Assembly (NCBI GenBank): GCA_002269645.1
Contig: NIVC01000946.1
Coordinates: 337,101 to 401,100 of the forward strand
DNA: 64,000 nucleotides
Origin: Macrostomum lignano
Lineage: Eukaryota
Direction: 5' to 3'
The stretch's first letter is position 1. The number at the start of each line of letters is the position of its first letter. Position numbers and translations under genes: made by a program. The notes under the pieces are model-generated. The model searched no databases, was not told the origin of the DNA, and saw only the letters and a list, made by a program, of their open reading frames with translations. This document shows positions 26,401 to 29,400 of this stretch, one piece after another.

Positions 26401-29400
26401 AATGAGCGCCTGATTTGTGAAATAAGCGCCTGATTTGTGAAATAAGCGCCTGATTTGTGTAATGAGCGCCTGATTTGTGAAATAAGCGCCTGATTTGTGA
26501 AATAAGCGCCTGATTTGTGAAATGAGCGCCTGATTTGTGCAATGAGCGCCTGATTTGTGAAATAAGCGCCTGATTTGTGAAATAAGCGCCTGATTTGTGA
26601 AATGAGCGCCTGATTTGTGCAATGAGCGCCTGATTTGTGAAATAAGCGCCTGATTTGTGAAATAAGCGCCTGATTTGTGTAATGAGCGCCTGATTTGTGA
26701 AATAAGCGCCTGATTTGTGAAATAAGCGCCTGATTTGTGAAATGAGCGCCTAATTTGTGCAATGAGCGCCTGATTTGTGAAATAAGCGCCTGATTTGTGA
26801 AATAAGCGCCTGATTTGTGTAATGAGCGCCTGATTTGTGAAATGAGAGCTTAATTTGGTGTAATAAGCGCCTAATTTGGTTTCAAAGAGCGCCTAATTGG
26901 GTTTCGGGTGAGCGCCCAGGGGACGCATTGTTAAATTTTGATCAAACGAACTCAGCCCCTACCGTCTCTCTCCTGGTCTCCGAGAACTTGTCCAGAATCA
27001 CGCCGGCAATTATGTTCAACAGCAGCACAAATATGATTACAAATGTTGCCATGGTGATAAAGAAGGATGGCAGTAGAAAGTCGAACTCTTTGATTGGCTC
27101 GTTCTTTGGCATGAATACCTGGGGTAGATGAGATTTGAGGTTTGGGCTCTCTGGTAGATTTTACAGCGAAAGCTGACCTCCAGCAACTGAGCTTCCTTCT
27201 GCTTTATTTATCCAAGAATAGTGTGCACTCACGTCAATCCACTTGTCGAAGATGAGGCCCTGTCTTATGAAGCAAACGAAGCACTGGAACATGGTCTCAC
27301 AGTACCAGTTGTCGTCCGAGAACACGTTGTAACGGAAGAAAGCGAAATTGAAAATTGACAGGATGTAGAGCATTAGGAAGGCCATCACCAGGATTGAGAG
27401 CATTGTTGAGGCTGTGGAATTTAGCGCAGGTGGGTAAGCTGCCTGAGCACCTGTGCTCACACTACGAGTCTAAGTTTAAGTACTCATAACTCCCATTACC
27501 GAACCTTGCTCTCATCTACCACATCTACCACATGATAGCTGCTCTCATCTACCACATCTACCAGATGATATCTGCTCTCATCTCCCACATCTACCAGATG
27601 ATATCTGCTCTCATCTCCCACATCTACCACATGATAGCTGCTCTCATCTCCCACATCTACCACATGATAGCTGCTCTCATCTCCCACATCTACCACATGA
27701 TAGCTGCTCTCATCTCCCACATCTACCACATGATAGCTGCTCTCATCTCCCACATCTACCACATGATAGCTGCTCTCATCTCCCACATCTACCACACTTC
27801 CACCACCTACTTTTGCTACTAAAAGCAGAAAGACCCATTATTAAGAGCCAGTTCTTACAGGCAGACTTCAAAGTGTAAACAACATTCTGCAGAACTACAT
27901 TGCCAGCAAAGATGTTAATGTGATGGAAGGCGAATAGATAGTAGCCCCAGTTGTCATAGTAACCGAAAATCGTGCCCAGAACAGACAGGACGAGTAGCAG
28001 GCCATAGTAGAAGGTTTCCGGCCCGATGAAGTGCACCTCCAGCCTGTTGATCCGCTTGGCCTCCGTGTACTCGTCCTGTATCTCGTCGCCACCGACTTCC
28101 TCTTGGCCGCCGTCGCCGCGTCCTTTCATGCCCTCGCTTTTGCCTCTGTTTGCTCCGCCGTCCGCTTCGCCGACATCTACGTCGCTGACGCTATCGTCTT
28201 CCTCGGCGTCGGCGCCTGACGACGGTGACGACGTTGTCTTCGACAACTTCGACAGGGTCCATCCGCGGCAGGTGAAAAGTTTTCTGAGCCCGGCGAGGTT
28301 GTTCCAGCCGGGCCGGTTCAGCAGCACGAATGATGCAAATAGGATGGCGCAGACGAAGGAGTGCACCAGGGCCAGGCCGAATATGGCCGGCCTGAGGTCG
28401 CTTTTCACGTCTGGCACGGCGCTGGATTGGATTGAATGCGGATTGAACTTTTTTTGGTGACATCGTTCCACAACCAGCTCTGAGGCAATTCTGCTCATTC
28501 CGCCGCTGACTCCTGATGCACGTGCAAGCGCGCCAATACTGTACCCAGGCACGCACTCAAACACGCGCTCAAAGACAGCGACTCTTTGACTTTCTAATCG
28601 TCAGGCATGTGCACTCTCTGTGTGCCTTGGGGGCTGGTCCTCATGGCTGTGAATCACACGACAAACCCCTAAGCACCCGAGATTCAGAGGCGTTTTACCG
28701 CTGAGCTGCTCCGACCCCCTCCCCCCTTTTTTTTTTTTAGAGGCAGGGGGGTTGTGTGCACCCTGGCGCACTTTAAGCGACATAGGCACACAACCGGCGA
28801 GAGGCACTACTGCCCATTCCGCCGACTCCCCTGAGCAGGCATACAAGCGCGCGGATACGTTACGCAGGCACACACTCACACAGGAGTGTACAGCGGCCCT
28901 AACTTTTATCAATTGTTAGGCATGTACACTTCACTGCGCCTTGGGGGGTTGGCTCTCAAGGCCGTTAATTGCACAAGCGAGCCAAGCCAAGATTCCAATC
29001 CAGCCCCAAATTAATGTGGCTGCACTTGGAATCGAGCCTGGGTCGCGGCACACCAGAGCAGCTGCGCTACCGCTGGGCTACGGCCCCCCTCCCCTCCCCC
29101 CTATAATCAACGGTTCAAATACAATGTCAGAAGTCCAAAACCCAAAAGTCCAGACTTTGTGTATTTTTCCAGGAAATCAGGCCTTCAATTAAGTGTACAT
29201 CGTCGTTAAGTTCTGCTTCCTGGCACTACGAGCGATTCTTCAGCTGTCCTTGGATGCACATAAGTTGTCTATGGCCATGATTAAACTGGCTAAATAGGAT
29301 GGTCAAGGACTGCCAGATCACATGTACACTTCCGGTAACTTGAATTTATTGAAATCAATCAATTGATTACACCTGCCCCAATTGCCAGATGTGCAACCGA

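Follow-up and report, generated by a model that had tools for sequence, protein, structure and literature searches.

Gene structure, domain architecture and pore

The stretch of DNA analysed here (hereafter, the window) comprises 64,000 nucleotides of the flatworm Macrostomum lignano (assembly GCA_002269645.1, contig NIVC01000946.1, positions 337,101 to 401,100 of the forward strand). It contains the gene BOX15_Mlig019232g4, whose product has the domain architecture of the inositol 1,4,5-trisphosphate (IP3) receptors (IP3Rs) and is without the selectivity filter typical of these channels and of the ryanodine receptors (RyRs). The whole coding range of the gene is 17337..53720 on the minus strand, and all of its features given below are on the same strand. 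The annotated protein PAA74467.1 (2767 aa) was mapped onto the window by exact spliced mapping at 100% identity, as 32 coding exons with GT-AG introns throughout, and the translation was identical to the deposited protein. This annotated model was used in our analysis; our own gene-finder prediction, partly set by hand, matched 25 of the first 30 exons and had five boundaries off. The GenBank annotation of the assembly was built from genome-guided RNA-seq with StringTie, TACO and a de novo transcriptome (PMC5730564), and the junction between exons 27 and 28 is therefore supported by transcripts. The initial annotation of this DNA, made from the letters only, had proposed this very junction (phase 0, GTGAGT/CCAG), and it recurs in the RNA-seq-derived PAA74467.1. 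An older and independent model in UniProt (A0A1I8H486) has an identical pore sequence and identical 27/28 and 28/29 junctions.

Five Pfam domains were found in the gene product in the order known from IP3Rs: Ins145_P3_rec, MIR, RYDR_ITPR, RIH_assoc and Ion_trans. The first four (PF08709, PF02815, PF01365 and PF08454) had E-values of 7e-12, 4e-11, 4e-13 and 3e-17, all above the gathering scores, and Ion_trans was detected on the channel part with an E-value of 3e-7. The N-terminal suppressor domain (Ins145_P3_rec) is encoded by exons 1-4 (51827..53720) and aligned to residues 8-188 of IP3R1, the best PDB match of the N-terminal 759 residues (E 4e-23). Exons 6-7 (49622..50233) encode the MIR or beta-trefoil part of the ligand-binding core with the motif DVHLRLR, as seen in an alignment to the structure 5xa0. 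The RIH domain (PF01365) with the positions of the Y567/R568/K569 triad is in exon 10 (47332..47871), and RIH_assoc with two acidic Ca2+-sensor positions, the latter placed by alignment, is in exon 23 (31316..32069). Exon 26 (27859..28421, phase-1 donor GCCT/gtaaga) encodes the transmembrane helices before S5, an acidic and Gly-rich loop and the S4-S5 region. Downstream of the pore, exon 29 (25310..25507) carries the post-S6 linker and a C2H2 zinc finger (CLLC...HHVENEH) with an intact C-x2-C...H-x4-H pattern, and exon 30 (23432..23569) carries the C-terminal domain. No SPRY, RyR-repeat or EF-hand domain was found by Pfam (PF00622, PF02026 and PF06459 were without match). The IP3R architecture recognised in the initial annotation is thus confirmed by the five domains and the lack of SPRY and RyR repeats.

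The pore is encoded by two exons. Exon 27 (27233..27411, acceptor ccacag, donor ATTGAC/gtgagt) covers S5, a short luminal loop, the pore helix and the filter segment, and exon 28 (26963..27118, acceptor ccccag, donor GAGACG/gtaggg) covers a luminal turn and S6. The 111-aa peptide of these two exons alone matched IP3R1 (E 4e-4) and RyR3 (E 1.4e-3) in the PDB, and on these sequence scores its similarity to IP3R and RyR is not a matter of chance. In the place of GLRSGGGVGD in IP3R and GVRAGGGIGD in RyR, the flatworm protein has GLIFDKWID (aa 2553-2561; 27233..27259), which is one residue shorter than the aligned filter of IP3R1. The Cys pair of the pore helix in CETMFQC (Cys2539 and Cys2545; 27281..27301) was invariant in two family alignments. 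The S6 gate is known to consist of Phe and Ile in IP3R (LNLIFGVIID) and of Gln and Ile in RyR. In the corresponding segment of the flatworm protein (aa 2595-2606; 26984..27019), Ala2599 (codon 27005..27007) aligned to the Phe gate position of IP3R1, and Leu2603 stands at the Ile position. The protein therefore combines the N-terminal domain set, RIH_assoc and a channel domain with pore helix, S6 and zinc finger, all marks of the IP3R/RyR superfamily, with a filter segment in which the superfamily motif GGGxG(D/E) is not present. The alignments agreed with the initial annotation on the absence of GGGxGD, the Ala at the Phe gate position, the short loop between S5 and the pore helix, and the intact Cys pair, S6 N..G..D pattern and zinc finger.

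We built an AlphaFold2 monomer model from S4-S5 through the C-terminal domain with a 27-row alignment (mean predicted local distance difference test score, pLDDT, of 75). It predicted a pore helix over CETMFQC..GLI, followed by an extended FDKWI, a short turn and an S6 of 50 residues. The best Foldseek matches of the model were the transmembrane domains of RyR1-3 and IP3R3 (probability 1.0, TM-score about 0.4). Because the score of the whole model was only about 0.4, the model confirms the fold class only.

The absence of the motif could in principle mean that the gene is a canonical ITPR from which an exon with GGGxGD was missed or is alternatively spliced. Nothing except the missing motif speaks for this explanation, and we give it practically no credence. 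Intron 27 (27119..27232, gtgagt...ccccag) is only 114 nt long and holds no coding insert, so that an extra exon between 27233 and 27118 is not present. A search of the open reading frames between 22 and 34 kb found neither one that codes for GGGxG(D/E) nor a second one resembling a pore helix, and the two gene models agree. Moreover, relatives in other phyla carry filter segments of the same length as that of the flatworm, likewise without the motif.

An identity as RyR was considered and rejected, the protein having no SPRY or RyR domains, a length of 2767 aa and an S6 with Ala/Leu and not Gln/Ile. The last 814 residues scored about equally against the structures of RyR2 (E 8e-25) and IP3R2 (E 3e-24). 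The protein resembles the RyRs in this channel domain, in the short luminal loop and in a predicted single hydrophobic gate ring like that of the Gln/Ile arrangement. It differs from them in size (about 2770 versus about 5000 aa), in the lack of GGGIGD and in the lack of Gln at the upper gate position.

Family placement and pore variation

The channel half was used as the query of an exhaustive HMMER scan over 1.84 billion representatives, which returned 2118 matches. The nearest non-self relatives were 31-37% identical, and all of them were without GGGxGD. Among the named relatives were Mlig033347 of M. lignano itself, Pomacea (filter GLIGDMFEEI), Octopus (GLIGDLFESI), Tubulanus (GLIGDLLDGM), Patella (GLSDGMYNTF), Saccoglossus (GLLESFHESI), Capitella (GLIVGPTEGF), Sinanodonta and the Capsaspora protein CAOG_04510 (GLENGLASVG); the filter of a probable Sycon sequence reads GLLATLGDVI. 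Further relatives, from land and sea snails, oysters, a clam and an alvinellid polychaete, came from a profile search, whose matches were mainly short fragments and included no other flatworm. In the roughly 30 clusters that were looked up, every named member of the clade without GGG was spiralian, hemichordate, sponge or filasterean. Protist and fungal sequences among the matches keep GGG(I/L)G(D/E).

A neighbour-joining tree was computed from a MAFFT alignment of 80 long sequences and 1692 columns, in which the row of rat IP3R1 was checked in part against PDB alignments and published residue numbers. The flatworm protein joined the group with GLIGD filters with 80% bootstrap support, and support was 78% with the addition of Patella and Saccoglossus, 97% for the metazoan clade without GGG and 85% with the addition of Capsaspora. 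Rat IP3R1 and the sequences of the GGGIGD type were outside this clade, and the protein is thus not nested in the canonical ITPRs. Its branch was the longest in the clade, with a distance to the outgroup of 2.0 compared to 1.3-1.8 for the other members.

Judging from its members, this clade is probably the family that Alzayady et al. 2015 (Mol Biol Evol 32:2236) described as IP3R-B or IP3RB. Citing Alzayady et al. 2015, a study on the leech (Heath-Heckman et al. 2021, PMC7992859) places IP3RA, IP3RB and RyR in the bilaterian ancestor and states that vertebrates have lost IP3RB and that Drosophila and C. elegans do not have it. The study assigns genes of limpet, leech, polychaete and acorn worm to IP3RB, describes the physiology of IP3RB as remaining to be determined, and gives a strong enrichment of the leech gene ip3rb2 in touch neurons. 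The accession of the Capsaspora IP3R-A (PMC9522344) is a protein different from CAOG_04510. Because the taxa of the clade and its Capsaspora member match the published IP3R-B, we filed the gene under this family.

The initial annotation had suggested a third branch of the superfamily, and this was correct in that the protein falls outside the canonical ITPRs and the RyRs. That such a branch would be unrecognised so far and first seen in this gene is, however, very unlikely. The position of the protein in the tree, outside canonical ITPR-like and RyR sequences, and the nearly equal scores of its channel domain against RyR and IP3R structures would agree with a new branch. Against this, the protein lies with 78-97% bootstrap support inside a clade of mollusc, annelid, nemertean, hemichordate, sponge and Capsaspora sequences that matches the published IP3R-B, and the protein and its relatives are already present in GenBank and UniProt. 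The gene is an already annotated member of a known family and not a new class. We found no mention of Mlig019232 or Mlig033347 in the papers and supplements searched.

To separate features of the family from those of the flatworm paralog, we compared pairwise identities by segment in 37 other IP3RB-like sequences and 100 GGG-type sequences obtained in the same searches. GGGxGD was missing in all 37 IP3RB-like sequences. The filter identity was 0.19 among the IP3RB-like and 0.62 among the GGG-type sequences, and that of the flatworm protein to the IP3RB-like ones was 0.10. For S6 the respective values were 0.74, 0.59 and 0.41. In the family S6 is nearly fixed as FFIxITTIGLNI(I/V)FGIIVDTFSELR. 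Since all members of the clade that we examined are without GGGxGD, the loss of this filter is old and family-wide. The initial annotation had described the filter as completely rewritten in this gene, which has to be given up: the loss is shared by the family, and the nearest relatives read GLIGDLF(D/E). Even GLIFDKWID keeps the pattern of the latter, with Gly-Leu-Ile, an Asp, an aromatic residue two positions on and an acid nearby.

What is specific to the Mlig019232 paralog, as far as the sequences compared tell, is the Phe, Lys and Trp in the filter, the change from Phe to Ala at the gate and the divergent S6. Ala at the S6 Phe position was seen in the flatworm protein alone among the IP3RB-like sequences compared. 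M. lignano has at least two more groups of IP3R-B type, with the filters GLIGDLFDNL (the second paralog group, Mlig033347) and GFDWRLVRNL (a further protein, A0A1I8FJM8), and both of them have the family S6 LNIIFGIIVDTF. The combination of a free filter with a fixed S6 was not found stated in the IP3R-B papers that we searched, a set to which Alzayady et al. 2015 did not belong.

Among known systems, the flatworm protein is closest to the IP3R-B family (Alzayady et al. 2015), to which ip3rb1 and ip3rb2 of the leech belong (PMC7992859). It has the same architecture without SPRY or RyR repeats and no GGGxGD, the motifs DVHLRxR, (K/R)x(K/R)QKxxR, MCDGQ and TxNE, a short loop from S5 to the pore helix, and the zinc finger. 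It clusters with the members from Capsaspora, hemichordate, limpet and annelid, and more than one paralog per genome is found in spiralians. It differs from its nearest relatives in the filter (GLIFDKWID versus GLIGDLF(D/E)), in a triad of SSK versus SRK, in an S6 that diverges from the nearly invariant LNI(I/V)FGIIVDTF, and in a branch about 1.4 times longer. With the canonical IP3R-A (ITPR1-3 and invertebrate Itpr) it shares the five Pfam domains and their order, the Cys pair, the S6 N..G..D pattern and the zinc finger. The overall identity to IP3R-A is, however, only about 20-25%, and the flatworm protein lacks GGGVGD and the long glycosylated loop between S5 and the pore helix and has Ala and Leu for the Phe and Ile of the gate. 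By description, IplA of Dictyostelium and the IP3R-like channels of protists may be set beside it as divergent proteins of IP3R architecture with an uncertain ligand. The Octopus relative was named 'IP3R-like protein A' by NCBI after IplA.

The duplicated copy and the genomic surroundings

The gene has a duplicate (g1, PAA71334.1) on contig NIVC01001171.1 of the same assembly. Between the coding exons of the two copies there were 13 nonsynonymous and 42 synonymous differences, giving 0.0020 nonsynonymous (dN) and 0.0235 synonymous (dS) differences per site and a dN/dS of 0.087 over the whole coding sequence (binomial p 2e-17, relative to the proportion of nonsynonymous sites expected under neutrality). 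On this comparison of sequences, the gene is under purifying selection and is not decaying. The initial annotation had supposed selection rather than decay on the grounds of the intact pore motifs, and the ratio, far from 1, is in agreement with it. The divergence of the copies was mosaic, exons 1-11 and 27-30 being identical or nearly so and exons 12-26 differing by 1-3%. Such a pattern points to recombination or gene conversion between the two copies, or to haplotypes mixed in the assembly.

The ratio also bears on the explanation that the gene is a duplicate in decay, or a pseudogene, with a pore that has drifted. The long branch and the unusual residues of the pore would be expected from decay, and the assembly contains much redundancy and many duplicates of recent origin (PMC5730564). 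Nevertheless, we regard decay, at least in recent times, as highly improbable, because the coding sequence of 8.3 kb is open over 32 exons at two loci, dN/dS is low and the model is derived from transcripts. The neighbouring gene provides a further control. An intronless gene for a Cys-loop channel (477 aa; 20353..21786, minus strand), with the domains Neur_chan_LBD and Neur_chan_memb, is nested in the intron between exons 30 and 31. In the duplicated locus (29984..31393 there) it has a premature stop and a deletion of seven residues, and a remnant of 225 aa is annotated. Disabling mutations do occur in the duplicated block, yet the IP3R-B gene gained no stop and its 8.3-kb coding sequence contains none of them.

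Some features at the ends of the gene deserve mention. Met1 and Met31 of PAA74467.1 are both candidates for the start, and the homology to IP3R begins at Met31 (MRERLHIGD). The sole GGGVGD within the gene is found upstream of Met31, in low-complexity sequence of exon 1. There a run of Gly codons (53655..53690) yields the letters of the canonical filter, which is most likely a coincidence. At the other end, the annotated transcript bypasses an in-frame TAA at 23399 by using the donor GAACAG/gtaagt at 23432, and it continues from exon 30 to 18225..18151 and 17390..17337, spanning the nested receptor gene. These two small exons may be the true 3' end or the product of a merged transcript assembly.

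Of the 30.9 kb of the gene span (23300..54200), 15.3 kb, or about half, are tandem repeats. Minisatellites fill almost all of the introns, and spurious long open reading frames arise in all frames, for example at 51.8-52.8, 46.1-48.7, 39.2-40.7 and 23.6-26.9 kb. A dispersed repeat of about 370 bp occurs in two introns in the same orientation (36757..37124 and 28727..29091, minus strand) with 94.6% identity. Outside the gene, a block at about 54900..64000 is AT-rich (GC content of 28-40%, compared to 45-55% elsewhere) and has several long open reading frames on the plus strand. One of them (58869..60533, 554 aa) contains an endonuclease VII domain (Pfam 1e-7; PHROG endonuclease VII), and the other ones gave no matches. 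A mobile element or a virus-like insertion might account for this block. The left edge of the window has a reading frame on the plus strand (26..763) in which Pfam recognised a fatty-acid desaturase domain (E 2.5e-14); it probably represents a single exon of some other gene.

Ligand pocket and possible conduction

The pocket for the ligand is only partly conserved. In the alignment with IP3R1, four of the 12 IP3-contact positions are identical (R265, which is in the DVHLRLR motif, K508, R511 and K569) and two are conservative (R504K and R506K). The other six are changed (T266L, T267R, G268P, R269M, Y567S and R568S), and the full set of 12 coordinating residues of canonical receptors is thus not present. 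The cluster R504/R506/K508/R511 reads K, K, K and R at about aa 596-605 in exon 9 (K-L-K-Q-K-M-M-R), and the SRK triad of the family is SSK in the flatworm protein. Because of these four identities and two conservative changes in 12 positions, a canonical high-affinity gating by IP3 is doubtful. The acidic residues of the Ca2+ sensor are kept, E1978 of IP3R1 corresponding to Asp1953 and E2042 to Glu2007. The first of them is Asp in all metazoan IP3RB-like members.

We favour, with moderate confidence, the view that the gene is an expressed, functional and fast-evolving IP3R-B paralog of M. lignano, with a pore altered in conduction. The protein would assemble as a tetramer in an intracellular membrane. 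Alzayady et al. reportedly observed a tetramer in an intracellular membrane for the IP3R-B of Capsaspora and no Ca2+ release evoked by IP3; for the same Capsaspora protein, a location in the endoplasmic reticulum (ER) and a lack of IP3 binding are also reported. The cytosolic scaffold, with the Ca2+ sensor and the partly conserved basic ligand pocket, would be coupled to the S6 bundle. Ions might then pass a filter lined by the side chains of Asp2557, Lys2558, Trp2559 and Asp2561, and not by a glycine backbone as in IP3R-A and RyR. From a filter lined by side chains, weak or no selectivity for Ca2+, or a small conductance, would therefore be expected. The gate would be a single hydrophobic ring of Leu2603, because Ala replaces the upper ring of Phe.

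It is also possible, although we consider it rather unlikely, that the protein does not conduct at all; the initial annotation had put forward a non-conducting regulatory subunit beside a different selectivity or conductance. The protein might form tetramers alone or with other IP3RB paralogs of Macrostomum, in which its role as a subunit would be regulatory or structural, or it might sense a ligand or Ca2+ at contacts of the ER. The filter contains Lys and Trp, is one residue shorter than that of IP3R and belongs to a segment poorly conserved across the family (0.19 versus 0.62 in the GGG type), and the S6 is an outlier (0.41 versus 0.74) in an otherwise very conserved segment. In addition, according to a secondary source (PMC9113742), IP3R-B was unable to bind IP3. 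However, the Cys pair, the Asn/Gly/Asp pattern of S6, the zinc finger and both acids of the Ca2+ sensor are kept, and two Asp remain in the filter segment. It is also hard to explain why S6 would be the most conserved segment of the family if it had no role in a pore or gate. The purifying selection on the whole protein fits a conducting channel equally well and does not discriminate between the two.

Several points weigh against an expressed channel with altered conduction and have to be kept in mind. A ring of Lys in the filter together with an S6 that is 41% identical to a family with 74% internal identity could mean a non-conducting pore, and the filter had a pLDDT of 61-72 in a monomer model from which no pore radius is obtainable. 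The dN/dS was derived from two nearly identical copies (dS of 0.02) with mosaic divergence, and the pore codons are uninformative on selection because exons 27-30 are identical in both copies. The long branch in the neighbour-joining tree makes the exact position inside the clade uncertain. The equation of the clade with IP3R-B relies on the composition of taxa and on CAOG_04510 as a second, non-A gene of Capsaspora. Finally, no conductance or ligand was found assigned to a metazoan IP3RB in the literature searched.

At the level of the family, we tentatively consider that IP3R-B as a whole is not selective for Ca2+, a proposal that we would call possible and not yet probable. Its members would combine a very strongly conserved S6 gate with a filter that is lined by side chains and evolves freely. 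They might be cation channels of the ER with another selectivity, or sensors of ligands or of mechanical stimuli, and the flatworm paralog would be a neofunctionalised extreme among them. If this is true, the paralog with its Lys and Trp in the filter and its widened upper gate would be a natural experiment on how much change the filter tolerates in this superfamily.

What remains of interest is therefore the contrast of a free filter with a fixed S6 in IP3R-B, together with the additional remodelling of the pore in the flatworm paralog. IP3R-B is an old branch of the main superfamily of intracellular Ca2+-release channels and has been kept in many invertebrate phyla. The concrete question that it raises is what passes through the IP3R-B pore. 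M. lignano is tractable for transgenesis, and its paralogs form at least three groups, each with a filter of its own; it would therefore be a reasonable system in which to address this question.

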